Of a stretch of DNA of 64,000 nt, positions 76 to 60,863 are shown piece after piece. This DNA comes from Piromyces finnis finn (Eukaryota > Fungi > Neocallimastigomycota). Each line of letters starts with the position of its first letter. The first letter of the stretch is position 1. The notes under the pieces are model-generated. The model saw only the letters and a list, made by a program, of their open reading frames with translations. It did no database searches and was not told the DNA's origin. The DNA is taken from positions 336,664 to 400,663 of the forward strand of contig MCFH01000052.1 of assembly GCA_002104945.1 (NCBI GenBank), in the 5' to 3' direction. Position numbers and translations under genes: made by a program.

Positions 76-763
76 TTATTAATTTTTTTTTTAATTTATT
101 AAAATTTTATTTTTAAAAATTTTATTTTAAATTTATTAACTATTTACAATAATTATATTAATTATTAATTATAAAAATTAAATATTTTATAATTAAACAA
201 TAATTAATTAAAATTAAAAAATGTAATAATTAAAATTGTTCATGTATAAAAAGAACAAAAATTGACAAAAATTACGAAGCTTTAGCGTTAGTAATTTTTT
301 AACTTAAAGTTAATAAAATTTATAAACTCCTATAAAACCTAAAACTTTAAAAATTTTAATATTTTTAATAACTTAATATATGCTGATATTAAGTTATTAC
401 TAAAATAAAAATATTATTTAATTTTCTTTATATAAATATTATTAGCTTTACGCCTTCAATAGGAAAGCGTATTATATTTGTTAATTAATATTGTAAAGTG
501 GGCTAGGGTTGATATGTAACTTGGTCAGAATGTTTTATATAATATAACTTAATTTACCAATAAAATATTAAACTTTTTTATTATTAAATCTTTTCTTTAA
601 GACTTATTAAAGAATTTTAAATAATACTAATTTAAAAATTAAATAGGTTTTTATATTTAAAATAAAAATTTTAATATAATTTAATTATGAAATTTATTTA
701 TTAATTATTTATTTATGAAAATAATATTTAATAAGTTATATTATAGATTATAGTTAATAATTA

Positions 764-795
764 TGATAAATAATTAAATTTATAAATTATGAATT

Positions 796-844
<49 letters not shown>

Positions 845-2197
845 TTAAAACACAGATAGTTGAAAATTAAGATAATTAACATGTATAAAATTATTAAATT
901 AAAAACTATAAATGTAAACTTTTTGTCTATTTAATTGTTTATTTAGTTTTAAATTAAATAGTTTATATTTGTTTATAATTATACTTTAAAATAATAATTT
1001 TGTATAAATAGTGATAGAATTATTTTATTTTAAAAAGATGTTCCTAATAATCCAGTAAAATTAGATAATAATATTAAATTTTATTAAAATAATAGTTGTG
1101 ATTATATTTACATACATTCAAGATGTATTAAACCATAACATATATATATTTAATAATACAAGAGTTATTAAATATTAAAACTTTATAATTAAATAAAATA
1201 ATTTTATATTTTAAACTAACAAAGACTTGCAAATGAACAAGTATAAAAATCATTTATTCTATTTTTATTTTCTTATTTATTTTTATTTATTAAATTTTAG
1301 ATACAAATATTATCACTTTCTATATTCATTTATAGAATTAAGATAATATCCTCTTCGTATCAAATGGTGGAGAATCCAAAAATCTACTGCGTAGCTAGTC
1401 TTAAGGCCGGAGGGAATTACGCGAACCTCTCTGTTCCCCATAGGAAACTACTGCTACTTCAAATTTAATTAATTTCAAAATTAATTAAAATCGGAATTAA
1501 CAATACTTCAACAATATATATTAATATATTCCAATATATTATTAATATATATAAAAAAAAAAATTTCACAAATATTTAATTCCAATAATTAAATAAACAA
1601 CATTAATATCAAAATTTTAAATATTCAAATTATTTAAAATAAAATCAATATTATAATACAAAAACATTATAATATAATTCAATTATAAATCCATAATCAA
1701 TTATAATATATACCAATTATATATTATAAAATAATAAAATTATAATGTATATTTCACCTGAATGAAAAACATTATATCCCTACTGCTCCGCTCTTCTAAA
1801 AACTTATATGAATTTCAAAATAATATGTGGATAATGGAATAAAAGTATCGGAAAATAAACTTTAAATAATAATAAACCATAAGTAAGCTTTATTTGATGT
1901 GGATATAAATGAAGAATAAATTTATTTGAAAAAGACACTGCAGCTACTATAAAAAAAAATATCCGGAAAATTATATATTAAAAATAAATTAAAGGAGGAC
2001 ATTAGAAATTAAACATGCATATAAAGAAAGAAAGAAGAAAATCCTAAGAAGAAGAAGAAGTAATAAAATGAAGATCTTTAATTATTTATAAAATTTAATT
2101 CTTTATCTATTATTTTTCTTTTCATAACTTCAAGGGACGAAGTTATATCTTAAGGGCGAAGATATTGATAAATAATTAAATTTATAAATTATGAATT

Positions 2198-2249
<52 letters not shown>

Positions 2250-2767
2250 TTAAAACACAGATAGTTGAAAATTAAGATAATTAACATGTATAAAATTATT
2301 AAATTAAAAACTATAAATGTAAACTTTTTGTCTATTTAATTGTTTATTTAGTTTTAAATTAAATAGTTTATATTTGTTTATAATTATACTTTAAAATAAT
2401 AATTTTGTATAAATAGTGATAGAATTATTTTATTTTAAAAGATGTTCCTAATAATCCAGTAAAATTAGATAATAATATTAAATTTTATTAAAATAATAGT
2501 TGTGATTATATTTACATACATTCAAGATGTATTAAACCATAACATATATATATTTAATAATACAAGAGTTATTAAATATTAAAACTTTATAATTAAATAA
2601 AATAATTTTATATTTTAAACTAACAAAGACTTGCAAATGAACAAGTATAAAAATCATTTATTCTATTTTTATTTTCTTATTTATTTTTATTTATTAAATT
2701 TTAGATACAAATATTATCACTTTCTATATTCATTTATAGAATTAAGATAATATTTCTCTTCGTATCA
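764..2767 (+). mobile_element. Non-autonomous short LTR element (TRIM-like, family G)
   Basis: LTRs 764-1362 and 2166-2767 (TGAT...ATCA, differ mainly in (TAA)n length); PBS TGGTGGAGAATCC at 1365; purine tract 2152-2165; 4-bp TSD ATTA (760-763 / 2768-2771); ~800-bp interior with no ORF. Confidence 0.9.
1365..1377 (+). promoter_or_regulatory. Primer-binding site, tRNA-Ala-type (family G)
   Basis: TGGTGGAGAATCC 2 nt after the LTR end; complement of a ...TCTCCACCA tRNA 3' end; same as element B PBS. Confidence 0.75.
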
Positions 2768-2775
2768 ATTAATAA

Positions 2776-3317
2776 GTCGTTCCAGTTTTTATCCTGGTTG
2801 TTAAGGCGTTGCCTTAGTATACATAAGGCTTCTGGTTCGACCCCGCAGATGTCAGTGCCTGTGGATTTTCCCACTGGGTTTGCCATGGGTTGGGTTATGA
2901 TATTCAGGTAAGTATAAAAGAACTTTCTAATTTAGTACTATGATAATAACACTCGTCTAGCCGGCCTGAGAGGGTCTAGTGTACATGGTACATTCCAAAT
3001 TAGAACTTAATAAGTGGTGACTTAGGCTATGCCAAAAACACACAATATTCCTTAATCAATTTAAGTGTAAACATTAGGGGGCGGTTGACACGTGATCAAA
3101 TTGACTATAAGAGGCTTAGCATTGTAGTTGTGAAATATCGTACAACGACATGCATCTAATGTACATGGATTAAGTGAGAGTCGAAGCTGAAGAAACAGTA
3201 TGACAGACCAGGAGGGTCACAACCACCTAGCAATAGGAATGTGCCAACGTTTCTCTAAGAACCACCATTGGAGCTAACTCCGATCGATGGGAGAAATGCA
3301 CTCGGAAGTTAAAAAAA
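2776..3317 (+). mobile_element. tRNA-derived SINE
   Basis: A-box-like CCTGGTTGTTAAGG, GCCTTA/TAAGGC stem, B-box GGTTCGACCC, ~540-bp body, A-tail, 12-bp TSD AATAATTAATAA (left copy split by element G); empty site visible in the J LTR near 49310-49335; second partial copy at 32735-32884. Confidence 0.85.
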
Positions 3318-4272
3318 AATAATTAATAATTAATAATCTTACAAAGAATTTCAAAATTGATTTTAATTCTTTGTTTAAATACTTTTTCTTACATATAATA
3401 AATTTACATTGATATTAATATTGATATTAATAAAGATAAAAATAAAATAATTTTAAATTAAAATATTAATAATTGATATTGATATTAATAATATGAATTC
3501 ATATGATAGATCTTAAGATTAATCTTTTAAATTACTTTTAAAATAAAAGTATTGTTTTAACCATTTTAAATAGTAAATATTTAATATTATAAATTGAGAA
3601 TAACAATTACTGATACTAATTATATATTCTCATGATTAATTAATTAATAATTATAACTAATGATTTTTGATCCAAAGGTTTTTTGGTTTGAATATGATTG
3701 AGGTTATTAATCAAAAATTATTTGAAAAATTATTAATTAATTTTTATAATTGATTAGATTTGAAATCAAGAATACTTATTATCTAACTTTATTTAATAAT
3801 AATGGAGAATTTTTAAATTGAATTATTTATAGAAAGTTGGATGACTTGAATAATGACTTTAATTATATAAATTAATATTGATCATTTTAATATATATTTA
3901 TTAGAACTAATCAATTCTTTAAATAGCTATATCTCAAGAACTAGTGGTCTAAATTAGCTGAAAATTTGTGAATATAGATCTCGACTAGTACTTTCTAATA
4001 AATTGATTTGAAGTCTCTAGAAAAGGAAAATAGGATACAAGATTCAGAAGTTATCACTAGTTTCGTATAGTGCATTTTCTTCTCAAGGGTTAATTTATTG
4101 AAAATTAAATTTTTGTGATCCCTAACCCTTTTCAATATTAAATTTTTTCAAGTGATCTTTTAATTATTTTTTAAAAGTGTTTTATAATTTTTGAAATATA
4201 AATTTGATTTTTAAATTGCTTATTTGAATATTTAATTTATTTTTTAATCGTCTTCTATCCTTGACAAATATA

Positions 4273-4889: not shown

Positions 4890-4893
4890 TATA

Positions 4894-5534
4894 TGTCAAA
4901 ATCACAATTCATGAAATTTGACATTTCATGAAATTTCATAATTTTGAATTATTAGTTAAATTAATTAAAATATTAATTTAATAATATTTTACTAATAATA
5001 GTTTATTTAATATAAATATTAATTGGAAAGCTATTTATTATCCGGAGATAAATAGTGTAACAATTAATTAATATTAAACAAACCAATTAGTAAAATAAGA
5101 TTCATTTAAATAATTATTAATATTATTTTTAACAACTTATTAATATCGATATTTAAAGAAAATTATATTATTATTATTATTATATTTTATTAATATTTAT
5201 ATTTATATTATTATACATGTATAACTTAAATTATATTATTATTATACTTTATTAATATCAACATTATATTAAAAATGAAAGTATAAATAAGTTGAACAAA
5301 GAACAACTTTAAGAAGTTCTTTGTGAGATTATTAATACTCATTTTTTTATATAGTAAATTCAATATTTAAAAATTAATAATTATTATTTATATATTAATA
5401 AAAAGCTGAATAAAATAATTCTTTAAAAATTATATTTATTATTCCTTATCTTAACACTTACTTTACTATATAATTAAGCCTATCCTAACCTAGTAGACTT
5501 AATTATAGTTCTAAATCCACTCTAACTCTTGACA
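4894..5534 (+). repeat. Element A 5' LTR
   Basis: TGTCAAAATC...CTCTTGACA; no difference from 10474-11114 seen by eye. Confidence 0.95.
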
Positions 5535-5568
5535 ATAATCTCACCTTAACTTTGGTTACTACCTTAGG

Positions 5569-6669
5569 ATGGCAGAACAAAACTTTGCTAGCTCTTGGCA
5601 AACTATGGATGAAGTTAATCAACTCCGCGAAGATGCTAAAACTACTGCTGTAGACATTATGAACAGCGTTCAAGAAAACTTTGCTACTATTAGTCAAGTT
5701 AAAGACTTTGAAAAACATATTGAATCTCAGTTCCAAGAAATTAAAAGAAATACTGCTAATTTCGCACAAGTTTTGGAATCGGTCTCTAACAATATCAACA
5801 CCATTCAAGAGTATTTAAATAAGAATGGAAAACCAAGTGGTGGTCAGCCAGACCTTACCCCTTCAGTTGCCCCTTCTACATCTACAAAATATGATTTGGA
5901 TTTTGATGTAATAATGAGATCAAAATATTCCACTCCAATAAATCAAGTTCCAGATCCAGGTCTTTTTTCTGGTGATTCTCATGAAACAGAACTATTCTGT
6001 CAAATTTGTGAAGATATTTTTAGCACTTATCCTAATAAGCATATGATGGAAGAAGCCAAAATTAATTTTGTTAAAACAAGATTAAGAGGAATTGCTAGAA
6101 CTTGGTATTTAACAAGATACAGTGGAAATACTCATCCCTCTACTATGTTTGAATTATTAGTAGAATTAAAAAATGCTTTTCCAAATGTTTCAAGCCGCAA
6201 ATTAGCCAAGATTAAGCTAAGTAAATTGAAACAAACATATGGAAAAATTAATGAATATATGGAAGAATTTAGATCATATATTCAATATTTTAACTGGGAT
6301 CAAGAAGCTGTTACTCTTATGTTTTATACTGGTCTTCATCCTAAGTATCAAGAAGATATTGAAAGATTAGATGACTTTCCTACTACTCTCGAAGCTATTT
6401 TCACAAGATGTATTTTATTTGAACAAAACAATGTCTCAAATAAAAAGTTAAACCAAATTAATAATAAAAGCCATGGAAGAAAAAATTCTTTTTATAATAA
6501 CAATAACAATAATTATAATAATAATAGAAACAATTATCAAAAATATCACAATAATAATAATAACAATAATAATTTAAAATCTAATTATTCAACTAATAAT
6601 TATGGTGGTAATAATAATAATAATTATTCCACTACAAAAACCCAAAAAATTTCTTCAAAAAGTTTTTAA
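5569..6669 (+). CDS. gag: Gag (element A)
   Basis: 366-aa ORF after the LTR; retrotransposon capsid-like motifs (LRGIARTWY, LKQTYGKINEY, FYTGL). Confidence 0.9.
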   Translation: MAEQNFASSWQTMDEVNQLREDAKTTAVDIMNSVQENFATISQVKDFEKHIESQFQEIKRNTANFAQVLESVSNNINTIQEYLNKNGKPSGGQPDLTPSVAPSTSTKYDLDFDVIMRSKYSTPINQVPDPGLFSGDSHETELFCQICEDIFSTYPNKHMMEEAKINFVKTRLRGIARTWYLTRYSGNTHPSTMFELLVELKNAFPNVSSRKLAKIKLSKLKQTYGKINEYMEEFRSYIQYFNWDQEAVTLMFYTGLHPKYQEDIERLDDFPTTLEAIFTRCILFEQNNVSNKKLNQINNKSHGRKNSFYNNNNNNYNNNRNNYQKYHNNNNNNNNLKSNYSTNNYGGNNNNNYSTTKTQKISSKSF

Positions 6670-9600
6670 ACAATGAACACCATAAGACGTCAATGGATGT
6701 TCATAATACACCAAAAATTATTTATTATAATTTCCCATCTCTAGAGAACAAAGAAAATCCCAATTTAAATTCATTTTTAACCTTTAACTCATATATTCCT
6801 AAAGAATTTCTAAATAACAACTCTAATTTTATTACCAATTCTCCAATAACCTGTAATTCAATACTTGATTCAGGTTCCTCATGCAACTTTATTTCTACCA
6901 TATTTGTAGAAAAATATAATTTAATTAAAAGAAAATTAAAAAACAAATTGATTATAAAAGGTATTAGTGGGTTTACTACTGATATCAATGATTATGTTTA
7001 TTTAAAATTTCAATTAAAAATTTTTATCAAAAACAAATTTTATTTTATATCTTTTAAAGAAAAATTCTTAGTTTCAGAACATATTCCTATGGATTTATTA
7101 TTTGGAAATAAATTCATGAAGAAATTTAAGATTCATTTTAATTATAAAAATAATCATTTATATTGTAATAATTTTAAACACTTCAATAATAAGAATTTAA
7201 AAAATTTTTCAAAAAATTTAAAAATTTCTCATTCTAAAAAAGATTTTAATTATTCATTTTCCGATAATACTAATAATAATTCTACTAATTTCTCTCATAA
7301 ATCTAATCGTCAAGTTAAAGATAATAGTTCTATGTCTTCTAATAAGAGTGATATCAATTATTTTATCCATTCATTTTTATCTGAAAATGTCGAAAATTTT
7401 GATGATGATGAAGGAAATGACCTAACCCTTATCATGGATGAAATCCCTAATGAATATAAAGATCTTGCTGTTGTTTTCAGCAAATCAAAAGCTGATAAGT
7501 TACCTCCACACCGTTTAACTGATTGTAAAATAGTCCTAGAAAATGATGCCACTTTACATTATGGACCTATTTATCCTTTGTCAAGACAAGAGGAAGAAGC
7601 CTTACAAGAATATATTAATGAAAATCTTAAAAAAGGTTTTATTAGACCCTCTAAATCTCCTGCAGGTTATCCTGTTGTTTTCCAGAAGAAAAAAGATGGC
7701 TCACTAAGGGTTTGTATTGATTACAAAAAGTTAAACTCTGTAACAGTAAGGAATTCGTATCCTTTACCTTTAATATCAGATATCATTGAAAGGGTTAGGG
7801 GTTAAAAATTTCACTAAATTAGATTTGAGATCAGCTTATAATTTGATAAGAATAAAAGAAGGTGATGAATATAAGACGCTTTTAGAACAAAGTTTGGCCA
7901 TTACGAATATTTAGTAATGCCATATGGATTAAAAAATGCTCCAGCAACATTCCAATCATTCATAAATTCAATATTACGCGAATATTTGGATAAATTTGTT
8001 ATTTTATACATGGATGATATTTTAATTTTCTCAGAAAATCTCAACGATCATATCAACCATGTAAGATCTGTTTTAGATAAATTAATACAAAACAACTTAT
8101 ATGCAAAATTTGAAAAATGTGAATTTCATAAAAATGAAGTTGAATTCTTAGGTTTCACTATATCAAGTAATGGTATCTCTACTGATCCAAAGAAGATCGA
8201 AGCTATTAAAGAATGGCCTAGACCAAAATGTGTTAAAGATGTTCAACGCTTTTTTGGTCTTTGTAATTATTATAGAAGGTTTGTTAATAATTTTGCAAAA
8301 ATTGCCAAACCTTTACATAATTTAACTAGGAAAAATGTTAAATTTCATTGGGATAAGACGTGTGATGATGCTTTTGTAAAATTACAAAATAAATTAATTA
8401 CTTCTCCCGTTTTAGTTTTTCCTGATACTAATAGGCCGTTCATAGTAGAATGTGATGCCAGTAATTTCGCAATAGGTTCCGTTTTATCTCAATATGATGA
8501 TGATAAAAAACTACATCCTGTTGCTTATTTTTCCAGAAGTTTAAATGATACAGAAAGGAACTATTCCATTACGGATAAAGAACTTCTTTCTATTAAATCT
8601 GCTTTCTCAGCTTGGCGACATCTACTTTTAGGTGCCAAATTTAAAGCAAAAGTTTATACAGACCACCGTAATTTACTTTATACTTTAGGTGGAAAAATTC
8701 AAAATCAACGTCAACATCGTTGGCATCTCTTCTTCCAGGAATATGGTTTTGAATTAATTTATCGCCAAGGAAGAAAAAATGGTAAGCCTGATAGTCTTTC
8801 TAGAAGACCTGATTATAATTCTGGTAATGAACAAATTAAACCTTTAGAAACTCCTGATAGACCATGGCGTTCTGTTGAAATTGACTTTTTATGTGGTTTA
8901 CCTGATTCTAAAGGATATACTGTTCTAATGGTTACTGTAGATAGATTTTCAAAAATGATTCACTTAGTTCCTTTTAAGAAAATACCCGATGCTAAACAAA
9001 CAGCTACAGCTTTTATTAAAAATATATTTAAACTTCATGGATTGCCTTCTGATATTTATACTGATCGTGGTTCACAATTTACTAGTGATCTTTGGAATAG
9101 TTTAATGGAAGAACTTAAAGTTAAAACTAAAATTGCTACCACTGATCATCATGAAACAGTCGGTCAAGTTGAAAGATGTAATTCTTTTATTGAGCAATAT
9201 CTCCGCTGTTATTCAAAGTCCTATTATCATGATGACTGGGTTGAATGGATTCACTTAGCTGAATTTGTTTATAACAATTCTATTAATGAGTCTACCAAAC
9301 AAAGTCCTTTCTTTATTAACTATGGATTCCACCCTCCTGTTGATGATGTTTTTCTTTATGACAAATCCTATACTAATAATAATTTTATTAGAAATGTTTG
9401 TGATAATTTTAATTATGTTAAAGAAGTTTTATTTAGAGCCAAGGATTTATATAAAAAACATGCCGATAAGAAAAGGATGTCACCTCCTATATTTAAAGTT
9501 GGCGATAAAGTTTGGATTCAAGCTCCTCCATCCTTTTCTACGGAAGAAACTCCAAAACTTTCTCCTTGTAAATACGGACCTTATAAAGTTTTAGAAGTTT

Positions 9601-9935
9601 TGGAAAATAATAATTATAAAATAGATATACATAACTCCCCTTTCCCAAAACATCATCCAATATTCCATATTTCTGAACTTGAACCTTTTATTCCTACTCC
9701 TTCAAGATTCTTATCAAGATCAAAGGACCCCGAATCAATTAAAGATATCATTGAAATTGCAGGATTTAGAACTAACTATAAACTTAATAGGTATGAATAC
9801 AAAATTAGATATAAATACCGCTCTCAATATAATTGGGTTCCTTCTAGTGAAGTTGAAGATAATCCAAGGAATCAAAATATATTCTTATTATATTTAAAAA
9901 ATAACAGGAAGCCTATTGATATCGCTTATAACTGA
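6660..9935 (+). pseudogene. pol: Pol (PR-RT-RH-IN-chromodomain) of element A, frameshifted and internally deleted
   Basis: ILDSGSS protease, YMDD RT, CDAS RNase H, IN core, C-terminal chromodomain-like tail; frame breaks at ~7803 and ~7878; about 147 aa including the integrase HHCC zinc finger missing relative to element E. Confidence 0.85.
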
Positions 9936-10473
9936 AAAATAAAGAAATGAAGAGAGAGAGAGAAAGAATGAATAACAATGAAAAAACAAAATTATTACAA
10001 TGTAATTTTTTTTTCAATTAAATTCATCACAAATTTAAAAATTGAAATTTCAAAAATTTTTATATTCATTATTTTCCAACTATAAATTTTATTTTTTAAT
10101 TTATTATTATTAATATTTTCAATATTAAATTTTAAAATTTTCAAAAAACATAAAAAACCTTTTAAAATTGAAATTTAAAATTTCAAAAAAATCAAAATTT
10201 CAATTATAACAGTTGTACAACACAAAAAATTACAAAAACATGTTTTTCATACAATACATATATGTATTTCATAACAAAATTTCATTTTTACCAATTTTTG
10301 ACAACTTTTGAAATTTCGCGAAATGGCCATTTAAAATTCATTCCTCCATCCTCATGTGACCATTTCGAAATTTCAAAAATTTTGAAAATATTAAAATTTC
10401 AATATTTTAAATTCAATATAAGATATTCCACTATCAAAAAATTGTCTAGTATCCAATTTTAGTGGAAGGGCGT

Positions 10474-11114
10474 TGTCAAAATCACAATTCATGAAATTTG
10501 ACATTTCATGAAATTTCATAATTTTGAATTATTAGTTAAATTAATTAAAATATTAATTTAATAATATTTTACTAATAATAGTTTATTTAATATAAATATT
10601 AATTGGAAAGCTATTTATTATCCGGAGATAAATAGTGTAACAATTAATTAATATTAAACAAACCAATTAGTAAAATAAGATTCATTTAAATAATTATTAA
10701 TATTATTTTTAACAACTTATTAATATCGATATTTAAAGAAAATTATATTATTATTATTATTATATTTTATTAATATTTATATTTATATTATTATACATGT
10801 ATAACTTAAATTATATTATTATTATACTTTATTAATATCAACATTATATTAAAAATGAAAGTATAAATAAGTTGAACAAAGAACAACTTTAAGAAGTTCT
10901 TTGTGAGATTATTAATACTCATTTTTTTATATAGTAAATTCAATATTTAAAAATTAATAATTATTATTTATATATTAATAAAAAGCTGAATAAAATAATT
11001 CTTTAAAAATTATATTTATTATTCCTTATCTTAACACTTACTTTACTATATAATTAAGCCTATCCTAACCTAGTAGACTTAATTATAGTTCTAAATCCAC
11101 TCTAACTCTTGACA
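10474..11114 (+). repeat. Element A 3' LTR
   Basis: Direct repeat of 4894-5534, preceded by PPT. Confidence 0.95.
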
Positions 11115-11170: not shown

Positions 11171-11971
11171 TGATATAATATGATAATAATCTAAATTTTG
11201 AATTTTACTTCAAAAAGTGATTATTATATTATATCTTTTGTTATAACTATATAAGTTATATTGATTAAGATTTAAGATCGTTTTTATAAAAATTAATAAA
11301 ATTGTTTTGTTAAAACACTAAATTGTTTTATTAGAAACACTTGTTTTTCTAATATTTAAATATTTAAAATTTTATTTATTTAAGAATAAAAGTGATTATT
11401 AAAATTATAAAATATTAATCTAACTATATAATATTTCTTTATTAATAATAATAATAATAATTAAAATAAGAATATTTACATGTATTTATATTTTCTTTTA
11501 GATTTAAACTATTTACATTAAATTAATAACTATTTACAATAAAAGTAATAAAAGTAATTAGAAATAACAATAAAAGAAATAATTAAAAGTTAAAGAATAT
11601 AAAAAGTTGTTTATTTTACAATTAATTAAAGTAATAATTATTTTTAATGTTTTAATAAAGGTGTTTAATTATATTATTTTATAACATGAATTATTATATT
11701 TGTTTACTTTTAAAGTGTAATTTACTAACGAAGTTATTAAATATTTAATTTAACAATTAATTTAAAAGAGTTATATATTTTGATCTCGATTAATTAAAGT
11801 TTATTATTTTCTTTCAATAATCAAAATATATGCAGTATTTAGGATTAATTTTATTTAAGAATTTTGGTAAAGTACTTAATTAAACTATAACTTGTTTTAA
11901 GTTGCTTTTAGGGTTAACTTAAAAATCAGGTTTAATAATAATTTTATATTTATTAATTTCATTATTCATCA
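11171..11971 (-). mobile_element. Solo LTR family F (801 bp)
   Basis: Reverse complement of 41393-42194; TGAT...ATCA ends; TSD not cleanly preserved. Confidence 0.85.
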
Positions 11972-13996: not shown

Positions 13997-14008
13997 AGAT
14001 CCCCCCAC

Positions 14009-42328: not shown

Positions 42329-42359
<31 letters not shown>

Positions 42360-46058: not shown

Positions 46059-46130
46059 TGCCTATTGACGGAATCGAACCACCGACCTTCGCTTTACAAG
46101 AGCGACGCTCTACCACTAAGCCAAACAGGC
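46059..46130 (-). tRNA. tRNA-Thr (TGT)
   Basis: 72-nt cloverleaf, anticodon loop CTTGTAA. Confidence 0.95.
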
Positions 46131-46137
46131 ATTAAAT

Positions 46138-46208
46138 TGCGTTAACCGGGAATCGAACCCGGGCCATTTGCTTGGAAGGCAAATATTCTACCTCTATACT
46201 ATTAACGC
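46138..46208 (-). tRNA. tRNA-Gly (TCC)
   Basis: 71-nt cloverleaf, anticodon loop CTTCCAA. Confidence 0.95.
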
Positions 46209-46224
46209 CTTACTTTCATTTATT

Positions 46225-47301: not shown

Positions 47302-47305
47302 TATT

Positions 47306-47356
47306 TATAAAGAATGAAAATTATAAATAATGAATTAATAGAATAGCTGATTTTAA
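47306..47356 (+). mobile_element. 51-bp 5' stub of LTR family H
   Basis: Matches 45618-45668; cut by the I/J/D stack. Confidence 0.7.
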
Positions 47357-49587: not shown

Positions 49588-51909
49588 TGTCACGAATACT
49601 AGTGGAATCTGCAATTTCAAGATCACTTGAAATTGTGAAATTACTTATAAAATTTCAAAATCAATAATATTTTATTTTCAAATAAATTATAAAATTATAT
49701 TAAGAAATATTTAAAAAAATTTAGAAAAGGTTAAGATATGACCTTAACCCTTAATATTTTAATAATAAGTAACTTTAACCCTTATCGTCAAAATTAAATA
49801 AGGAAAAACATGTGTATCTCCTTAACGAATGGCGATTTTGGATAATTGTGTTTTGGGAGATTGTGGGTTCGTTAGAAATCCACGCTTGAGATAAACATCA
49901 TATCTTAAAATCAGGTCGATATCTCTGCTGGTTCACGAGATATTCCAATTTAAAGATATTTTGTTAGTAATGATTAATTGTTTATTCAGAGAATGATCAC
50001 CCCTGATGTATTGAACATAAATCATTCACCCAAAAGGATATAAATTATTGTTTTAATTAAATTAAGATTATTTTCCGGAATTAATTAACTTTATTTTATA
50101 ATAATTATTTCAATAACATAACTTATAATCTTTGAATTAAAAGATTATAAATTATTAATATTATATTCAATGAATTATATTATAATTAAGAAATAATTAA
50201 TATTATAAATATATAAACAATAGTTATTTTTAACAATTAGTAGTAAGTCTTAAGTTTAGCCTTAGTATTATAAAATATATTATGAATATAATCATGTACT
50301 AAAAAGTTATTTTAGTATTAAATGTAAAATTACAAATAGTATAAATAGTTTAGAATAGTTTTATGAATTAAATCTTTGTAAAGATTATTACCTTATTAAT
50401 ACTTAACAAGTAATACTATTAAATAATCTTATTATTATATATACTCTTCAAATAAAATAAAAAGAAATTATTTTAACTATAATACATAATTTAATTATTA
50501 TTATTCATTTAAAAAACAATTAAGATTATTTTAATAAAACATTTTTTCTAACCTAGTTATCTTTAATCTTTTATTTAATTTAATATTTTAATATTAAATT
50601 ATAAGTTTAGTAAAACTTTTACAATAATCTTTACCGCGTTTTTACCATAACTACCTTAGGAAAAAACTTAATTTAAAAAATTCCAAAATGACTCAACCAA
50701 CACCTAAACCAGTTCAACAATTTCTAAAGCCTCAAGATTTAGAAGAATTTAAGAAAAATCTTTGTGGTGAACTGGATAAGTACATTACTCAACAATTGGA
50801 CAAAAATACCACCTCCTTATTAGAACGTATGGATGCTATGTTAAAGGAACTCAAGAGCCGTGCTACTTATACTGAAACTGAAGAATCTTCTACTAGTTAT
50901 GATGAAGATCATGATGTTATAATGCGCAATAGAACCTATCCTATAAAACAAGTACCCGATCCAGGATTCTTTACTGGTGATACTACTCAGACTGAATTAT
51001 TCTGCGAACTCTGCCAAACTACCTTTAAAACTCCACCTAACAACCAGCTCTCTGAAGAAGTAAAAATTAACTTTGTTGTTGTTAGATTACGTGATTCTGC
51101 CAGAACTTGGTACCATATTAAATACAAAGATGGAATTGCTCCTATGATCATGAGCGAACTATTAAGTGAGTTAAACCAAGCCTTTTCAAATGTTACCAGT
51201 ACTAAATTAGCCATGATTCAATTAATAGAATTAAGACAAGCTTATGGAAAAGTGAATGATTATATTAACAAATTTAGAGATTTAAGTCGTTGCTTAGAAA
51301 TAGATGACACTAGTCTTTCACTATTATTTTTAAATGGATTACATCCAAAATATAAGAATGAAATTAAGAAAACTGATATTTTACCAAACACTTTAAGTGA
51401 AATGGTTACAAAGTGCATAATTTTTGAAAATTCTCTTGCAACCAATAACAAATTAAATATCAATATCAATAATAATAATATAATAATAATAATAATAAAA
51501 ACCAACATTACAACAAGAGAAAAAATAGAAAATTCAATAAGAATAAAAACCAATATCAAAATTCAAACAACAATAATAATTATGTCAATAAAGTTCAAAA
51601 AATTAACCCAAAAAACTAGGAAATGAACTCTCAAGAGAGTCTAAGAGGGTTCATAATACAAAAATAATACATTACAACTTTCCTACATATGACTCTAAAA
51701 TAAATATAAAATTGCCTACTACATTTTTTAATTTAAAATTTTATATTCCAATTAAATTAAACAAATTTTACGATTTAAAAGATTCAATTAATAAAAATCA
51801 ATACAATTTAATTTTAGATAGTGGCTCATATTGCAATTTTATTTCAATCAACTTAGTCAATAAATTAAAACTAAAACCACACAAATTATTACATTCAATC
51901 GAAATAAAT
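49588..51909 (+). mobile_element. 3'-truncated chromovirus, element D (same family as E)
   Basis: LTR 49588-50623 (family K), leader, gag and first part of protease; cut at 51909. Confidence 0.9.
50688..51626 (+). pseudogene. gag: Gag of element D, frameshifted in its Asn-rich tail
   Basis: Near-identical to E Gag up to the (AAT)n tract, then out of frame. Confidence 0.85.
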
Positions 51910-53041
51910 TGTTAAGTTTTTGGGTTTGGTTATGCGGCCAGGTCAGAATGTTATTAATTATATAGTAAAAATGTTTTTTAAGAAATTAAATTTAATTATA
52001 AAATAACACCTTAAACTCCCAAATGAAAATTGAAAAATTTATATTTACTTTAAAATAACTTTTTATAAATTTTTTATTTATTTAATAATAATAATATAAA
52101 TGATATTATAAGTAACTATATAATTAAGATTATAACTATAATCTTTACAAAGAATTAAAATCGAATTCAATTCATTCTCTTTTATATTCTTTGTTCAGAT
52201 TATTAAATTGATATTAATAAGAATAAAGTATTACATGTAATATATTAGTAATATAATTAAATAAGTAATAAGATTGTTTGTTTGTTTGTTTGTTTGTCAT
52301 GACATAAAATAAAATAAACATATGATTAATCATTTAAACAGTTGATCCTAATTAGTAATTATAAAAACTATTCAATTAATAATTCATCATTATTAATTGA
52401 TATTACCATAACATATTTGTTATAATTAAATAATTATTATTTTCAAAATTATTTCTAATAAAACTTGCCGTTAACCTATTTTATAATAATTAAGATTATT
52501 TAATTTATAGGTGTTAACTGTTACACCTAAATGGGTCTAGTTCTATTTTTAGTAACAATCGTTATCATTAATTAAATTAATATAACTAAAATTTCTATTG
52601 ATATATTTTTAATTTCATCAAGTCATAAGAAATATTTATGATCCATACTTGATATCATATTGATTTTAATTTACCTAATAAAATCTTTAAATGATCATAA
52701 CTTCCTTAAATGATCAGTTAGAAGGACCGCGATTGTACCAAATTGTAGCTTTCTTCCTAAGCTTTCCAATAAACCTAGTTTCATCACCGTAGTACTTATA
52801 GCCGTAGCGATCGTTTTTGGCGAGTTACACCTTATTTCGTACTTGCTTATTTTTGGTTAAGGGTTATAGTGTATTGATATTAAATTTTTGAAATCATAAC
52901 CCTTTCACTGAATCAAAATTTAAAAGGTGACTTTTAAAAGTGTTTTAAAATAATTATTGAAATTATTTAATTATAATTATTATGTTTAATTAATTATAGA
53001 TATTATCTGAATTTGTTTTAAATCCAGTTAATATCTCCACA
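51910..53041 (-). mobile_element. Solo LTR family I (1132 bp) with non-matching flanks
   Basis: Inverted homolog of 47357-48355; flanks TAAAT vs ATTAT. Confidence 0.85.
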
Positions 53042-54999
53042 ATTATTGTAAAAGTTTTACTAAACTTATAATTTAATATTAAAATATTAAATTAAATAAA
53101 AGGTTAAAAGATAACTAGGTTAGAAAAAAAAATGTTTTATTAAAATAATCTTAATTGATTTATAAATGAATAATTATATTATGTATTATAGTTAAAATAA
53201 TTCCTTTTTATTTTATTTAAAGAATATATATAATAATAAGATTATTTAATAGTAATACTTATTAAGTATTAATAAGATAATAATCTTTACAAAGATTTAA
53301 TTCATAAAACTATTCTAAACTATTTATACTATTTGTAATTTTACATTTAATAATAAAATAACTTTTCAATACATGATTATATTCATAATATATTTTATAA
53401 TACTTAAACTAAACTTAAGACTTATTCCTAATTATTAAAAAATAACTATTGTTTATAATATTCATAATATTAATTATTTCTTAATTATAATATAATTCAT
53501 TGAATATAATATTAATAATTATAATCCTCTAGTTCAAAGATTATAAATTATGTTATTGAAATAATTATTATAAAATAAAGTTAATTAGTTCCGGAAAATA
53601 ATTTTAATTTAATTAAACAATAATTTTTTATACTTTGAGTGAATGATTTATGTTTGATATATCAGGGGTGATCATTCTCTGAATAAACAATTAATCATTG
53701 CTAACAAAATATCTTTAAATTGGAATATCTCGTGAACCAGCAGAGATATTGACCTGATTTTAAGATATGTTGTTTGTCTCGAGCGTGGCTTTCTAACGAA
53801 CGTAATTATAACCAAAATATTATTATTCAAAAATCGTCATTCGTTGAGGAGATACGCGTGTTTTTTCTTATTCCATTTTAACGATAAGGGTTAAAGTTAT
53901 TTATTATAAAAATTATTAAGGGTTAAGGTCATATTTTAACCTTTTCTAAATTTTTAAATATTTCTTAATAAAATTTTATAATTTATTTGAAAATAAAATA
54001 TTTGTTGATTTTGAATTTTCATAAGTGATTTCACAATTCCAAGTGATCTTGAAATTGTAATTTCACTAGTATTCGTGACATCGCTCCGCCAAAAAAAATC
54101 GAATACCAGGCGATTGAAATAATATAAAATAAAGTTGTATAATAAAGTATAATTGAAATAAATTGAAGTAGTATATATTAAATATAAACCAATATATAGT
54201 TGTATGTGTAACATGAAATAAAATGGTAACTAAATAAAGAATATATTTAATATAATATGTTGAATATATTGCAATATATGAAATAAAATTAAAAAACATT
54301 TTCTTGTGTAACATTCAGTCAAATTCATAAAATTTTTGAAAGAAATGTTGAAATTTAAATTGATCATTGAGTGAAAAAATTGAAATTCGTACGAAAAATT
54401 AAAATTTGAATAAGAAATATTATTCCTAGGATATTGAAACACTTTTTATTTTTGAAAAATGTTAACATTTGCTAAAATAATTGAAATTTCAAAAATTGAT
54501 CAAATAAACTTTAATTAATATGATTTTGAAAAAAAAAATTTTTTGAAATTTTTGAAAAATTTTTAATAATAAAAAATTTTTTCATTAAATACAAAAAAAA
54601 TTTTGAACTAAACTTTTGAAAAAATGTCACTGAAAGAATATTGATTTTAATGATCGATCGAGATAGTGACAATATTGAAATTGATACTATTGAATAGAGA
54701 ATAAAATAAGCATTAACAACATATAAATATTTGTAATTGTACTGCTAAAATAAATTGAAAATTATTCTCTTTAAATATTTAATTTTCATTATAAAAATTT
54801 TGTGTTTTAAATTAAATAAATTGATAAAATTGTTGGATCAAAAATTATTGAATTGAAATTTAACATTCATAGAAAAAATTTTTGAAATTTGTGTTGAAAT
54901 GTATTAGATGAGTAATACAAATTATAATAAAACATAATGTTAGTGAAAGATATTAACAAATTTTTAAAAAATAAAATTGTTGAAATGCAATTTAAAGAA

Positions 55000-57900
55000 T
55001 TAGATTTTGTGTTTTCTAATACTTTTATTGAATTGAATTAATAATTCTTGATATCTTGGGTCACTTTCTATTACTGTAGCAGGAACCCAGTGCCAACTTA
55101 GGCGGTGATTATAACGAATTTTATATTCGTAGCGTTTTTCTTTATAATTTGTCCTAAAGTCACCAATTTCTATAATTTCTGCATTAGTTTCTTTATATTT
55201 AAATCTATTTTTAAATTTATCTGGCGTAGATACATAAGGTTCAAGTTCCGATATGTGAAATACAGGGTGGTGTTTTGGAAAAGGTGATTTTGAAATATCT
55301 ATTTTATAATTACCATTGTTTAAAACTTCTAAAACCTTGTAAGGACCATACTTACGAGGCGCTAGTTTGGCATTTTCAGTAGTAGCAAAAGCAGGAGGTG
55401 CATGAATCCAAACTTTTTGTCCTTCATTCAATTCAGGAGCAATAATTCTTTTCTTATCGGCAGCTCTTTTGTATAAATCTTGAGATCTAAGCAAAACATC
55501 TTTAACTAAAAGGAAATTTTTACTAACATCTTTAATGTATTTAAAGTTTGAATCAGAACCTTGAAACAAAAAGACATCATCCATAGGTGGGTGGAATCCA
55601 TAATTAATGAAAAATGGAGTTTGTTTTGTCGATTCATGAACTGTATTATTATAAACAAATTCAGCTAGATGTAACCATTCAATCCAGTCATCGTGGAAAA
55701 ATGTTCTTGAATAGCAACGTAAATATTGTTCAATGAAAGAGTTACAACGTTCTACTTGACCAACGGTCTCATGGTGATCTGTGGTAGCTATTTTTGGCTT
55801 AACACGCAATTTTTCCATAATTTCTATCCATAAAGCACTAGTAAATTGTGTTCCTCTGTCCGTATAAATATCTGTAGGTAGTCCATGGAGTTTAAAAATA
55901 TTTTTTAGGAAAGCTTTGGCAGTTTCTTCAGCTGTAGGTATTTCTTTGAACGGAATAAGGTGAATCATTTTTGAAAAGCGATCTACAACAACCATTATAA
56001 CGGAAAACTTTTTTGATTCAGGGAGACCACAAAGAAAATCGATTTCAATAGATTTCCAAGGGCGATCAGGAATTTCTAAAGGTCTTAAAAGATCATATCT
56101 TTTATGTCTATTAACTTTATTTCTGGAACATTGTTCGCAAGAATTGACAAAATTTACGATATCTTGATGCATTTTGGGCCACCAAAAATTACGGTTAATT
56201 AGTTCTTCAGTTCTTCGAATACCTAAATGGCCAGCAGTAGCGTTATCATGGTACCTGGTTAAAATATCTACATGAAGTTTTTCTGGTACATAAATTAAAT
56301 TATTATATAAAATTAAATTATTTTTTATTTTAAATTTTTCCATTTTTCTGAAAGGTCTGTAAAAGTAACCTTGATTAGCATTATTAGGACTAAAGTAAAG
56401 ATAAATATTATTCGCATTTTCATCATCCTTATAATTTTCTATTATTTGATCAATGAGAGAACCAACAATACCAACAAAACATGGAGTATCGGGAACGTTT
56501 TTATAATCTAATATATGTTCTGGTTTAGGTTCAACATTATTTTTCTCGTAATCAGGTCTTCTTGACAAACTATCAGGTTTACCATTTTTTCTTCCTTGGC
56601 GGTATATTAATTGAAAATTATATTCTTGGAAAAATAAATGCCAACGATGTTGACGTTGGTTTCCGACTTTACCACCTAAGGTGTATAGAAGGTTTTTATG
56701 GTCAGTAAAAACGGTTACTTGGTATTTAGCACCTAGTAATAAATGTCTCCAGGTAGAAAATGCACATTTTATAGCTAAAAGTTCCTTTTCAGTAATTGAA
56801 TAATTTAATTCAGCATTGTTTAAACATCTTGAATAATATGCTACAGGATGTAATTTGTTATCTTCATCCTTTTGAGAAAGTATACAACCAATGGCAAAAT
56901 TACTAGCATCGCATTCGACAATAAATGGTTTGGTTGGATCTGGATGTAATAAAATAGGTGAAGAGATTAGTCTCTTTTTTAATTCTAAAAATGAGTTATT
57001 ACATTTATCATTCCAATTAAAACTAGTATTTTTCTTTGTTAAATTGTGAAGCGGTTTAGCAATAGTAGCAAAATCTTTTATAAATCTTCTATAATAGTTG
57101 CATAATCCAACAAAGCGTTGAACATCTTTTACACAATTAGGTGTAGGCCATTCTTGGACAGATTTAATTTTCTTTGGATCAGTAGATATACCATTGCCTG
57201 ATATAACGTGTCCTAAAAATTCAACTTCTGGCTTGTGAAATTCACATTTCTTTAATTTAGCAAATAAATTATTTTTGAGCAGTGTTTGGAGAACAGTACG
57301 AACATGTTGTATATGTTCATCTAATGTTTCCGAGTAAATCAGAATATCATCTAAATATAAAATAACAAATTTTTCTAAATAAGGGCGTAATACTGAATTA
57401 ATAAATGATTGAAATGTAGCAGGGGCATTTCTTAGACCAAAAGGCATTACTAAATATTCATAGTGACCATATTTAGTTCTAAAAGCTGTCTTATATTCGT
57501 CTCCTTCACGAATACGCACTAAATTGTAAGCAGAACGAAGATCTAATTTTGAAAAAAATTTAGCACCTTTCACTCTTTCGATAATATCAGTAATTAGAGG
57601 AAGTGGGTAAGAATTGCGAATTGTAACTGCATTTAATTTTTTGTAATCAATACAAAGACGTAACGATCCATCCTTCTTTTTCTGAAATAAAACAGGATAA
57701 CCAGCTGGAGATTCAGATGGTCTAATGAATCCTTTCTTGAGATTTTCATCTATGTATTCTTTAAGAACTTGGGATTCATCTTCAGATAGAGGATATATAG
57801 GACCATAATGTAAAGAAGCATCTTTTTGTAAAACGATTTTACAATCCGTTAGCCTATGTGGTGGTAGTTTATCAGCCTTAACCTTGCTGAAAACTTCCGC

Positions 57901-58605
57901 TAAATCACGATATGGTTCTGGTACTTCTTCTAATTTGAAGTCTTCTTCATTATCATCTTCATCATCAGTATTATAATCTTTTTCACTATTAGCTAAAAAT
58001 GAGTGAATAAAGTAATTATAGCTGAAATTTTGATATTTTGGTTTAGAGTAATTTTTCAAATTATTAAAAGATGTATTGGAAGTTAATTTATTATGATTAA
58101 TGGTTTTAATTTTTAAATTTTTGGATTTATTCAATCGGTTTTTATTAATTTTATATATAATTTTATTAGAATTTAATTTTTTAAAATTGTTAAAATTTAA
58201 ACTTGAATATACAAAATTTTTATTATAATTAAAATGTAGTTGATATTTGTGTAAAAATTTATTGCCTAATAACAAATCTGTTGGAAGATTTTTAATAATT
58301 AGAAATTTTTCTTTAAAAGTAATTAAAAATTTTGAATGATTAATATAGATAGTAGTCTTAAAATATAAGAAGGTGTATGTATCAATAAATATTGAACCAC
58401 TAATTCCATTTATTTCAATTGAGTGTAATAATTTGTGTGGTTTTAGTTTTAATTTATTGACCAAGTTGATTGAAATAAAGTTGCAATATGAGCCACTATC
58501 TAAAATTAAATTGTATTGATTTTTATTAATTGAATTTTTTAAATCATAAAGTTTGTTTAATTTAATTGGGATAAAAAATTTTAAGTTGAAAAATGTTGTA
58601 GGCAA
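55000..58605 (-). CDS. pol: Pol (PR-RT-RH-IN-chromodomain) of element E; frame is open upstream to ~58707
   Basis: ILDSGSY protease, YLDD RT, CDAS RNase H, HHCC, DDE, GPY, chromodomain-like tail (EIIEIGDFRTNYKEKRYEYKIRY...WVP). Confidence 0.95.
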   Translation of the reverse strand: MPTTFFNLKFFIPIKLNKLYDLKNSINKNQYNLILDSGSYCNFISINLVNKLKLKPHKLLHSIEINGISGSIFIDTYTFLYFKTTIYINHSKFLITFKEKFLIIKNLPTDLLLGNKFLHKYQLHFNYNKNFVYSSLNFNNFKKLNSNKIIYKINKNRLNKSKNLKIKTINHNKLTSNTSFNNLKNYSKPKYQNFSYNYFIHSFLANSEKDYNTDDEDDNEEDFKLEEVPEPYRDLAEVFSKVKADKLPPHRLTDCKIVLQKDASLHYGPIYPLSEDESQVLKEYIDENLKKGFIRPSESPAGYPVLFQKKKDGSLRLCIDYKKLNAVTIRNSYPLPLITDIIERVKGAKFFSKLDLRSAYNLVRIREGDEYKTAFRTKYGHYEYLVMPFGLRNAPATFQSFINSVLRPYLEKFVILYLDDILIYSETLDEHIQHVRTVLQTLLKNNLFAKLKKCEFHKPEVEFLGHVISGNGISTDPKKIKSVQEWPTPNCVKDVQRFVGLCNYYRRFIKDFATIAKPLHNLTKKNTSFNWNDKCNNSFLELKKRLISSPILLHPDPTKPFIVECDASNFAIGCILSQKDEDNKLHPVAYYSRCLNNAELNYSITEKELLAIKCAFSTWRHLLLGAKYQVTVFTDHKNLLYTLGGKVGNQRQHRWHLFFQEYNFQLIYRQGRKNGKPDSLSRRPDYEKNNVEPKPEHILDYKNVPDTPCFVGIVGSLIDQIIENYKDDENANNIYLYFSPNNANQGYFYRPFRKMEKFKIKNNLILYNNLIYVPEKLHVDILTRYHDNATAGHLGIRRTEELINRNFWWPKMHQDIVNFVNSCEQCSRNKVNRHKRYDLLRPLEIPDRPWKSIEIDFLCGLPESKKFSVIMVVVDRFSKMIHLIPFKEIPTAEETAKAFLKNIFKLHGLPTDIYTDRGTQFTSALWIEIMEKLRVKPKIATTDHHETVGQVERCNSFIEQYLRCYSRTFFHDDWIEWLHLAEFVYNNTVHESTKQTPFFINYGFHPPMDDVFLFQGSDSNFKYIKDVSKNFLLVKDVLLRSQDLYKRAADKKRIIAPELNEGQKVWIHAPPAFATTENAKLAPRKYGPYKVLEVLNNGNYKIDISKSPFPKHHPVFHISELEPYVSTPDKFKNRFKYKETNAEIIEIGDFRTNYKEKRYEYKIRYNHRLSWHWVPATVIESDPRYQELLIQFNKSIRKHKI

Positions 58606-58697
58606 TTTTTTATTTATTTTAGAGTCATATGTAGGAAAGTTGTAATGTATTATTTTTGTATTATGAACTCTCTTAGACTCTCTTGAGAGTTCATTTC

Positions 58698-59608
58698 TTA
58701 GTTTTTTGAGTTCATTTTTTGAACTTTATTGACATAATTATTATTATTGTTTGAATTTTGATAATGGGTTTTATTCTTATTGAATTTCCTATTGTTTCTC
58801 TTATTGTAATGTTGATTTTTATTATTATTATTATTGATATTTAATTTATTATTAGTAGCAAGAGAATTTTCAAAAATTATACACTTTGTAACCATTTCAC
58901 TTAAAGTGTTAGGTAAAATATCAGCTTTCTTAATTTCATTCTTATATTTTGGATGTAATCCATTTAAAAATATTAGTGAAAGACTAATGTCATCTATCTC
59001 TAAACAACGACTTAAATCTCTAAATTTGTTAATATAATCGTTCACTTTTCCATAAGCTTGTCTTAATTCTATTAATTGAATCATGGCTAATTTGGTACTG
59101 GTAACATTTGAAAAAGCTTTGTTTAATTCACTTAATAGTTCGTTCATAGTCATAGGAGTAATACCATCTTTATATTTAATATGATACCAAGTTCTGGCAG
59201 AATCACGTAATCTAACAACAACAAAGTTAATTTTTACTTCTTCAGATAGTTGATTGTTAGGTGGAGTTTTAAAGGTAGCTTGGCAGAGTTCGCAGAATAA
59301 CTCAGTCTGAGTAGTATCACCAGTAAAGAATCCTGGATCTGGTACTTGTTTGATAGGATAGGTTCTATTACGCATTATAACATCATGATCTTCATCATAA
59401 TCAGTAGAAGATTCCTCGGTTTCAGTATAATTAGCACGACTCTTAAGTTCCTTTAACATAGCATCCATACGTTCTAACAAGGAGGTGGTATTTTTATCCA
59501 ATTGTTGAGTGATATACTTGTCTAATTCACCACAAAGATTTTTCTTAAATTCTTCTAAATCTTGAGGCTTTAGGAATTGTTGAACTGGTTTAGGTGTTGG
59601 TTGAGTCA

Positions 59609-59609
<1 letters not shown>
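58698..59609 (-). CDS. gag: Gag (element E)
   Basis: 303 aa, homologous to A and D Gag. Confidence 0.92.
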
Positions 59610-59639
<30 letters not shown>

Positions 59640-60730
59640 AAATTAAGTTTTTTCCTAAGGTAGTTATGGTAAAAAACGCGGTAAAGATTATTGTAAAAGT
59701 TTTACTAAACTTATAATTTAATATTAAAATATTAAATTAAATAAAAGGTTAAAAGATAACTAGGTTAGAAAAAAAAATGTTTTATTAAAATAATCTTAAT
59801 TGATTTATAAATGAATAATTATATTATGTATTATAGTTAAAATAATTCCTTTTTATTTTATTTAAAGAATATATATAATAATAAGATTATTTAATAGTAA
59901 TACTTATTAAGTATTAATAAGATAATAATCTTTACAAAGATTTAATTCATAAAACTATTCTAAACTATTTATACTATTTGTAATTTTACATTTAATAATA
60001 AAATAACTTTTCAATACATGATTATATTCATAATATATTTTATAATACTTAAACTAAACTTAAGACTTATTCCTAATTATTAAAAAATAACTATTGTTTA
60101 TAATATTCATAATATTAATCATTTCTTAATTATAATATAATTCATTGAATATAATATTAATAATTATAATCCTCTAGTTCAAAGATTATAAATTATGTTA
60201 TTGAAATAATTATTATAAAATAAAGTTAATTAGTTCCGGAAAATAATTTTAATTTAATTAAACAATAATTTTTTATACTTTGAGTGAATGATTTATGTTT
60301 GATATATCAGGGGTGATCATTCTCTGAATAAACAATTAATCATTGCTAACAAAATATCTTTAAATTGGAATATCTCGTGAACCAGCAGAGATATTGACCT
60401 GATTTTAAGATATGTTGTTTGTCTCGAGCGTGGCTTTCTAACGAACGTAATTATAACCAAAATATTATTATTCAAAAATCGTCATTCGTTGAGGAGATAC
60501 GCGTGTTTTTTCTTATTCCATTTTAACGATAAGGGTTAAAGTTATTTATTATAAAAATTATTAAGGGTTAAGGTCATATTTTAACCTTTTCTAAATTTTT
60601 AAATATTTCTTAATAAAATTTTATAATTTATTTGAAAATAAAATATTTGTTGATTTTGAATTTTCATAAGTGATTTCACAATTCCAAGTGATCTTGAAAT
60701 TGTAATTTCACTAGTATTCGTGACAATTAT

Positions 60731-60776
60731 TCATGAAATACTTAAAATATTATATTTTTCTATGCATCTTGTATCA
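60731..60776. mobile_element. Probable LTR terminal stub ending GTATCA, 16 bp upstream of tRNA-Gly
   Basis: Same terminal hexamer as families B and G and the same spacing to the tRNA; the rest is not identifiable. Confidence 0.5.
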
Positions 60777-60792
60777 AATATATTAAAGTAAA

Positions 60793-60863
60793 GCGTTAAT
60801 AGTATAGAGGTAGAATATTTGCCTTCCAAGCAAATGGCCCGGGTTCGATTCCCGGTTAACGCA
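60793..60863 (+). tRNA. tRNA-Gly (TCC)
   Basis: Same sequence as 46138-46208, inverted. Confidence 0.95.

Follow-up and report, generated by a model that had tools for sequence, protein, structure and literature searches.

Retrotransposons have repeatedly evolved the ability to target tRNA genes, and the locus described here raises the question of what keeps such elements at constant distances from tRNA genes in an anaerobic gut fungus. We analysed a window of 64,000 bp from Piromyces finnis (contig MCFH01000052.1, positions 336,664 to 400,663 of the forward strand). The G+C content of the window is about 20%. It contains six tRNA genes, namely initiator methionine tRNA (tRNA-iMet), tRNA-Cys and two Gly-Thr pairs, and long terminal repeat (LTR) retrotransposons crowd the upstream side of each tRNA gene. 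An earlier reading of the same DNA (the sequence-only reading) had proposed that a fungal chromovirus lineage evolved precise integration anchored to RNA polymerase III (Pol III) and shares the space upstream of tRNA genes with a second lineage. Two fixed distances were indeed recovered, but the cases that it had placed at tRNA-iMet, elements A and L, did not hold. Overall we consider it probable that two Ty3/gypsy lineages integrate at two fixed positions beside Pol III-transcribed tRNA genes, the distal one being tethered through TFIIIB.

Six of the eight independent insertions of the distal families in the window (E, X', X, Y, E2 and solo A) are located at -67, counted from the tRNA's mature 5' end (all coordinates in Table 1). 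At the tRNA-Gly gene starting at 60793 the full-length element E ends exactly 67 bp before the gene and carries a 5-bp target-site duplication (TSD), ATTAT, as had been read before. Its gag and pol open reading frames (ORFs) are uninterrupted. The end of X' touches the TSD of E, which means that the ATTAT site was used twice; at the far end of X' we found no TSD. Upstream of the other tRNA-Gly gene, with its 5' end at 46208, the order is 16 bp, solo B, 51 bp ending in TTTAA, X, Y and E2. TTTAA is found at every junction of this stack, 16+51 = 67 bp from the gene, and therefore three successive insertions hit the same five bases. The stack at this distance in the earlier reading was thereby confirmed, its members being X, Y and E2. 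At tRNA-Cys, solo A is placed after base 52 of the F#2 LTR, whose start is 15 bp from the gene, so the previously noted 15+52 = 67 bp was reproduced as well (64–67 bp when the intervening T-run is taken into account). E, the X/Y/E2 stack and solo A all have TSDs of 5 bp, and the distal TSD spans -67 to -63. In all six insertions at -67 the LTR 5' end (TGTCA... or TGTGA...) faces the tRNA gene, and the elements are therefore transcribed away from it. Chance is ruled out as the source of this position: three loci whose flanks differ have the same distance, to the base.

The proximal lineage (B, C, F and G) is located 13–16 bp upstream from the 5' end of mature tRNAs and has 4-bp TSDs. This site corresponds roughly to the Pol III start site, as for Ty3. 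Distances of 16, 15 and 16 bp had been given for B, C and solo B, and we obtained the same values together with the 4-bp TSDs CAAC, TTTT and TATT. At tRNA-Cys the copies C, F#1, G and F#2 are parted by T-runs alone, and the same is true of B, L and F-rev at tRNA-iMet. Judged by LTR identity, younger copies are nearer to the tRNA gene (711/711 identical positions between the two LTRs for C, 1075/1076 for B and 1033/1034 for E). At tRNA-Gly 60793 the spacer opens with TGATAC exactly at -17 (60771-60776), like solo B at the other tRNA-Gly. Likeness to B in the 25 bases after this motif is weak (an equal score was reached by 33 of 500 shuffles), and an old B-type LTR may have left this sequence behind.

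Is the distal site set by distance or by sequence? At two of the three loci the spacer of 51–52 bp is the start of an older F-type LTR, namely F#2 at tRNA-Cys and an F-like sequence at tRNA-Gly 46208 (z = 6 versus shuffles). The sites of solo A and of the X/Y/E2 stack both correspond to base 52 of these homologous LTRs, beside a shared motif, CTGATTTT. The distal lineage might accordingly recognise a position or motif in F-type LTRs (around base 52, ..CTGAT/TTTWA), and 67 would be merely the sum of 15 and 52. We regard this as improbable. The spacer at tRNA-Gly 60793 resembles neither F (z ≤ 1.2) nor the spacer at tRNA-Gly 46208 (z = -0.4) and it starts at -17 instead of -16, yet the distance is still 67. 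Base 52 is uninterrupted in the remaining F and G copies (F#1, F-rev and G). A further argument against an LTR motif comes from outside the window. External contigs were gathered from metagenomes by searching with the E pol and by looking up eight homologous proteins; true 5' flanks were present only in four of them (L084, L082, L097 and L087), nearly all others being wrap-around or LTR-bounded short-read assemblies without flanks. One of the four, L084 (JGI 3300021285), has a bona fide tRNA-Val with an A-like element that begins 65 bp away and is likewise oriented divergently, and inspection of this 65-bp flank revealed no LTR start.

Because the target at tRNA-Gly 60793 is unrelated to those at the other two loci, and because the L084 element lies 65 bp from tRNA-Val, the data support distance, not sequence, as setting the site. 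The sequence-only reading had reached this conclusion from differences between the target sequences. The conclusion stands, but the targets TTTTA and TTTAA are not independent, since both are at base 52 of homologous F-type LTRs. In L097 and L082 the 5' LTRs of relatives start about 65 bp from tRNA-like sequences (L082:370-446 and L097:1270-1342). These are related to each other and tRNA-sized, contain an A-box-like motif, a GGTTCGAnTC B-box-like motif and a T-run, and align along tRNA-Val; their acceptor ends seem unpaired when judged by eye. They may be pseudo-tRNAs or members of another Pol III gene family, and as support for a spacing of about 65 bp they are only suggestive.

The coding domains identify both E and A as Ty3/gypsy LTR retrotransposons: their LTRs have TG..CA ends, they are flanked by TSDs and they show the order gag, protease (PR), reverse transcriptase (RT), RNase H (RH) and integrase (IN). 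Pfam matches to Retrotrans_gag, RVT_1, RT_RNaseH, Integrase_H2C2 and rve follow one another in that order, and a D-S-G protease motif was seen in the clade alignment. The gag of element A is intact. In both elements the integrase core is followed by a Tf1-type SH3 (GPY/F) domain (PF24626; E-values of 2.5e-14 for element E and 2.6e-13 for element A). The last 90 residues of E gave no Chromo match in Pfam, even at an E-value of ≤ 10, and BLASTP of this C-terminal module against a canonical chromodomain relative gave no match either. The module is conserved across the clade. The closest 30 relatives are without PF00385, and relatives at 41–50% identity carry it. We modelled the last 159 residues of the E integrase with AlphaFold2 (mean predicted local distance difference test, pLDDT, of 78). 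The best structural match of this model was the Ty3 integrase in its complex with TFIIIB and a tRNA gene (7q5b; E-value 8e-4 over 157 columns), and it also matched many chromodomains (root-mean-square deviation 1.4–2.6 Å, TM 0.7–0.83). In a manual sequence comparison one of three aromatic-cage positions was still aromatic, and for this reason the chromo-like domain, which shows as a fold alone, looks vestigial, as in Ty3. The term chromovirus used before fits the Tf1-type SH3 domain; a chromodomain is seen in the fold of the model and not in the sequence.

The two lineages also differ in their putative priming sites. Eleven bases after the 5' LTR of E (59681-59691) are complementary to LTR position 791, and ten bases after the 5' LTR of A (5535-5544) to LTR position 430; both matches begin at the first base after the LTR and were read from the sequence. 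E2 has the same bases after the LTR as E. A TGG-type primer binding site (PBS) was not found after the 5' LTR of E or A, and the distal lineage appears to be self-primed in a Tf1-like manner. The first five bases after the E LTR coincide with the TSD of E. B, C and G have a tRNA-type PBS of the form TGGTGGAGA. Calling the proximal lineage "other Ty3 elements", as had been done, turned out to be a misnomer, since the pol of E has the higher score against Ty3 (460 bits, versus 364 bits for that of B). Relatives of the E gag and pol were found in Orpinomyces and in many metagenome and Logan assemblies. In element B (14009-19941), pol is longer by about 325 residues, which are located between its RNase H and the zinc finger of the integrase; some of this insert, and parts of gag too, consist of low-complexity repeats with a period of 9–15 bp.

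How could a second sharp position arise on the same genes? The TSD centres of the two tiers, at about -14.5 and about -65, have their symmetry point at about -40 relative to the mature tRNA end. With Pol III starting some 10 bp upstream of that end (PMC5911963), the symmetry point is about -30 from the start. In yeast TFIIIB this is the place of TBP, and docking on the upstream face is proposed on these grounds. From this geometry and the structural likeness to the Ty3 integrase, the distal intasome would have its tether to the Pol III pre-initiation complex at TFIIIB, on the upstream side. The docking face would be the side of Bdp1, the Brf1 C-terminal part and the TBP N-lobe, mirroring Ty3 on the downstream face. 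The integrase C-terminal domain together with the vestigial chromodomain would serve as the ruler. In Ty3 the vestigial chromodomain is a ruler that binds Brf1 and DNA at TFIIIB (bioRxiv 10.1101/2021.07.27.453949). New copies would enter between the tRNA gene and the preceding copy, so that stacks build up. Tentatively, and with less than an even chance in our estimate, the model may be taken further: the Pol III pre-initiation complex would then offer two mirror-image integrase faces, the upstream one used by the Tf1-like lineage (-67) and the downstream, Ty3-type one by the second lineage (-15); the two families would in this way have every tRNA gene in common, and a proximal LTR would become the landing pad of distal elements.

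Several points weigh against tethered integration at two fixed positions. The window contributes just three loci, and outside it a single locus is clear. One and the same landing pad, base 52 of an F-type LTR, serves at two of those three, and the value for tRNA-Cys varies with a T-run to which every proximal insertion may have added bases (range 64–67 bp). The external distance is 65 and not 67 bp. The tRNA-like sequences of L082 and L097 were rejected by relaxed ARAGORN and permissive Rfam scans, and L087, one of the four external 5' flanks, has no recognisable Pol III gene nearby. For the host, Pol III start sites and the position of TFIIIB were taken from yeast, and a face of TFIIIB is the predicted binding partner of the distal integrase. 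Finally, two of the eight distal-family insertions in the window, A and Y1, are away from any recognisable Pol III gene, and relaxed ARAGORN and permissive Rfam scans of their flanks accepted nothing. Y1 is located about 140 bp downstream of a decayed tRNA-Thr, with no recognisable tRNA 67 bp away.

Element A had previously been placed 56+12 = 68 bp from tRNA-iMet after removal of younger insertions. This arithmetic proved invalid. F-rev has no TSD, and the region has another copy at 61722-62334 in which F-rev and its flank recur at about 89% identity, whereas the LTRs of A are identical (641/641). This makes F-rev much older than A, which consequently inserted about 870 bp or more from tRNA-iMet. 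L, which had been assigned a distance of 67 bp from the same gene, fared no better: the sole TSD-flanked TG..CA candidate between F-rev and B (11974-12914; the match of this label is uncertain) abuts the -16/-17 site. LTR similarity did not settle the family or orientation of L.

Two further explanations of the -67 position have to be weighed. The integrase could read a positioned nucleosome or the boundary of a nucleosome-free region instead of a Pol III factor, similar to the guidance of Ty1, which uses upstream nucleosomes (PMC5006619, PMC5911963). The -67 site is outside the usual TFIIIB footprint, and chromodomain folds usually read histone tails, both of which would fit such a role of chromatin. 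We nevertheless consider it unlikely, as the position is exact to the base across loci and the same five bases are reused, which is sharper than usual nucleosome positioning. In addition, the aromatic-cage positions are mostly non-aromatic, Pfam found no Chromo match, and the best structural match is the histone-independent module of Ty3. The pattern could also reflect less confined insertion around tRNA genes followed by survival of the copies at these positions alone, or segmental duplication of one ancestral locus. Three diverged copies of the Gly-Thr locus are present in the region, and X'' at the start of the window and X' are probably one insertion that was copied. However, the intact Gly loci differ in their TSDs (TTTAA versus ATTAT) and spacers, tRNA-Cys and the external tRNA-Val are unrelated loci, and identical TSDs at successive junctions cannot arise by selection. 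This possibility is very remote in our view. Integration at a fixed distance through the Pol III machinery thus remains the reading that we prefer.

Ty3 of Saccharomyces cerevisiae resembles the distal lineage in its 5-bp TSD and its near single-base precision upstream of tRNA genes, and it resembles E in an integrase whose SH3-like C-terminal domain is followed by a vestigial chromodomain. It is also the best PDB sequence match to the E pol. The two differ in site, orientation and priming. Ty3 uses a tRNA primer and can integrate in both orientations at 1–4 bp from the start site, which is about -15 relative to the mature end; the E lineage, apparently self-primed, integrates some 50 bp further upstream and in a single orientation. 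The Ty3-type site is here occupied by B, solo B and C (16, 16 and 15 bp), not by the E/A/X/Y lineage (65–67 bp). Tf1 of Schizosaccharomyces pombe shares the Tf1-type SH3 domain (PF24626) and the apparent self-priming with E and A, but it targets Pol II promoters. Like the distal lineage, Tj1 of S. japonicus has one fixed orientation, and it targets tRNA genes (PMC4600332).

Among the elements of dictyostelids, TRE5-A and NLTR-B resemble the distal lineage in having their sites upstream of tRNA genes at distances of tens of bp (40–54 and 39–64 bp). TRE5 elements are oriented opposite to tRNA transcription, and the ORF1 protein of TRE5-A binds TFIIIB (PMC5911963). Both TRE5-A and NLTR-B, however, are non-LTR elements: they rely on target-primed reverse transcription, lack an integrase and occupy broader and closer windows than the distal lineage. 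Skipper-2 is a tRNA-gene-associated chromovirus with a diverged chromodomain, and non-canonical priming has been discussed for Skipper (PMC5006619). It differs from the distal lineage by inserting downstream of tRNA genes, at 8–23 bp (PMC5911963) and also at about 100–140 bp (PMC5006619; PMC5911963 for other dictyostelids). Here, six of the eight distal insertions are upstream at -67 and Y1 alone is downstream of a (decayed) tRNA gene. DGLT-A of Dictyostelium parallels the proximal B, C, F and G as a Ty3/gypsy element about 15 bp (13–33 bp) upstream of tRNA genes. Unlike the P. finnis case, it inserts in either orientation, and it has not been described together with a further LTR lineage in the same genome that uses a second sharp upstream site.

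Known LTR elements targeting Pol III genes use the start site (Ty3, Tj1, DGLT-A, Tyl, Tca8), broad windows (Ty1) or downstream positions (Skipper-2), and the known elements 40–64 bp upstream, TRE5 and NLTR-B, are non-LTR elements (PMC5911963, PMC5006619, PMC4600332). A table of known cases lists neither an LTR element with a sharp site near -65 nor a genome with two LTR lineages at two base-precise positions upstream of the same tRNA genes (PMC5911963). Our literature search did not find such targeting in Neocallimastigomycota. This agrees with the sequence-only reading; elements of chromodomain lineages at tRNA genes as such have precedents in Ty3 (bioRxiv 10.1101/2021.07.27.453949) and Skipper-2 (PMC5006619). 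Should the pattern be general, the Pol III machinery would have a second natural ruler to set beside the solved structure of Ty3 with TFIIIB, the view that vestigial chromodomains recognise transcription factors and not histones would be widened, and early-diverging anaerobic fungi would join the hosts of tRNA-gene targeting. For annotation, tRNA genes flag nests of stacked LTRs in such AT-rich genomes.

Table 1. Positions of tRNA genes, retrotransposons and further features in the 64,000-bp window.
Feature	Position	Strand	Description
X'' end (X-family LTR)	1-75	+	window begins inside LTR; followed by decayed Gly-Thr locus (76-491)
Y1 (distal-family solo LTR)	492-4266	-	TSD AATAT; G element and putative SINE nested inside
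G element	764-2767	+	short, non-autonomous; LTRs ~600 bp, PBS TGGTGGAGAATCC, TSD ATTA
Putative tRNA-derived short interspersed element (SINE)	2776-3317	+	perfect B box GGTTCGACCCC at 2834-2844, A-tail, TSD ~13-15 bp
Element A (distal)	4894-11114	+	full-length, TSD ATATA, no adjoining tRNA
A pol (PR-RT-RH-IN-SH3-chromo-like)	6693-9935	+	broken: one interrupted stretch in RT, six in-frame stops
F-rev (proximal-family LTR)	11171-11971	-	5' end ~14 bp from iMet discounting L and B
L solo LTR (TG..CA)	11974-12914		ATCAAC flanks, abuts -16/-17 site of iMet
Element B	12921-22688	-	full-length, TSD CAAC, 16 bp from iMet, 5' LTR facing tRNA
tRNA-iMet (CAU)	22705-22776	+	
Host ORF	28247-30166		100% identical to Piromyces finnis protein
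tRNA-Cys (GCA)	33377-33448	-	Rfam bounds, 5' end 33448
Element C	33464-41389	+	full-length, TSD TTTT, 15 bp from tRNA-Cys
F#1 solo LTR	41393-42194	+	proximal stack at tRNA-Cys
G solo LTR	42198-42773	+	proximal stack at tRNA-Cys
F#2 (5' LTR of truncated F element)	42778-44226	+	PBS-like TGG... directly after; split after base 52 by solo A
Solo A (distal family)	42830-43471	+	TSD TTTTA, 15+52 = 67 bp from tRNA-Cys, 5' end towards tRNA
tRNA-Thr	46059-46130	-	Gly-Thr pair copy 1
tRNA-Gly	46138-46208	-	Gly-Thr pair copy 1
Solo B LTR	46225-47301	+	TSD TATT, 16 bp from tRNA-Gly 46208
First 52 bp of F-like LTR	47305-47356	+	-16 to -67 of tRNA-Gly 46208; landing pad of stack
X solo LTR	47357-48355	+	TSD TTTAA, at -67
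Y solo LTR	48361-49582	+	TSD TTTAA, same site as X
E2 (E-like 5' LTR and gag region)	49588-51909	+	91.5% identical to E; TTTAA before it; far end lost to rearrangement
X' (X-family LTR)	51910-53041	-	89.6% identical to X; 5' end 67 bp from tRNA-Gly 60793 discounting E
Element E	53047-60725	-	full-length, TSD ATTAT, 67 bp from tRNA-Gly 60793, 5' LTR towards tRNA
E integrase C-terminal module	55003-55272	-	90 residues, chromodomain-like fold
Spacer at tRNA-Gly copy 2	60726-60792	+	67 bp; unrelated to F-like spacer of copy 1
tRNA-Gly	60793-60863	+	Gly-Thr pair copy 2
tRNA-Thr	60872-60943	+	Gly-Thr pair copy 2

The tRNA-Gly/tRNA-Thr locus is present in three copies (1-491, 45919-46230 and 60771-61082) with the genes 7 bp apart. 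Two of the copies are about 96% alike. In the third (76-491) both tRNA genes are decayed, apparently mostly via G/C-to-A/T changes, and the downstream 100 bp are still recognisable. X'', which precedes this copy, was left out of the distal tally, since it and X' probably go back to one insertion that was duplicated. A simple inverted duplication of the two intact Gly loci including their insertions is ruled out by the differences in spacers and TSDs. At 51905-51915, E2 breaks off inside its gag region and runs without a TSD directly into the inverted X' at the latter's far end, a joint made by rearrangement between the two facing tRNA-Gly nests.

The G element inside Y1 ends 8 bp before the putative SINE, which has a G+C content of 42% versus about 20% around it. 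This arrangement resembles integration of a proximal-tier element at a Pol III-type promoter. The 3' LTR of G faces the target here, unlike in the other proximal cases. Between tRNA-iMet and a host gene with an RGS domain, a 185-bp unit is present in two tandem copies that are 99% identical (24273-24645).

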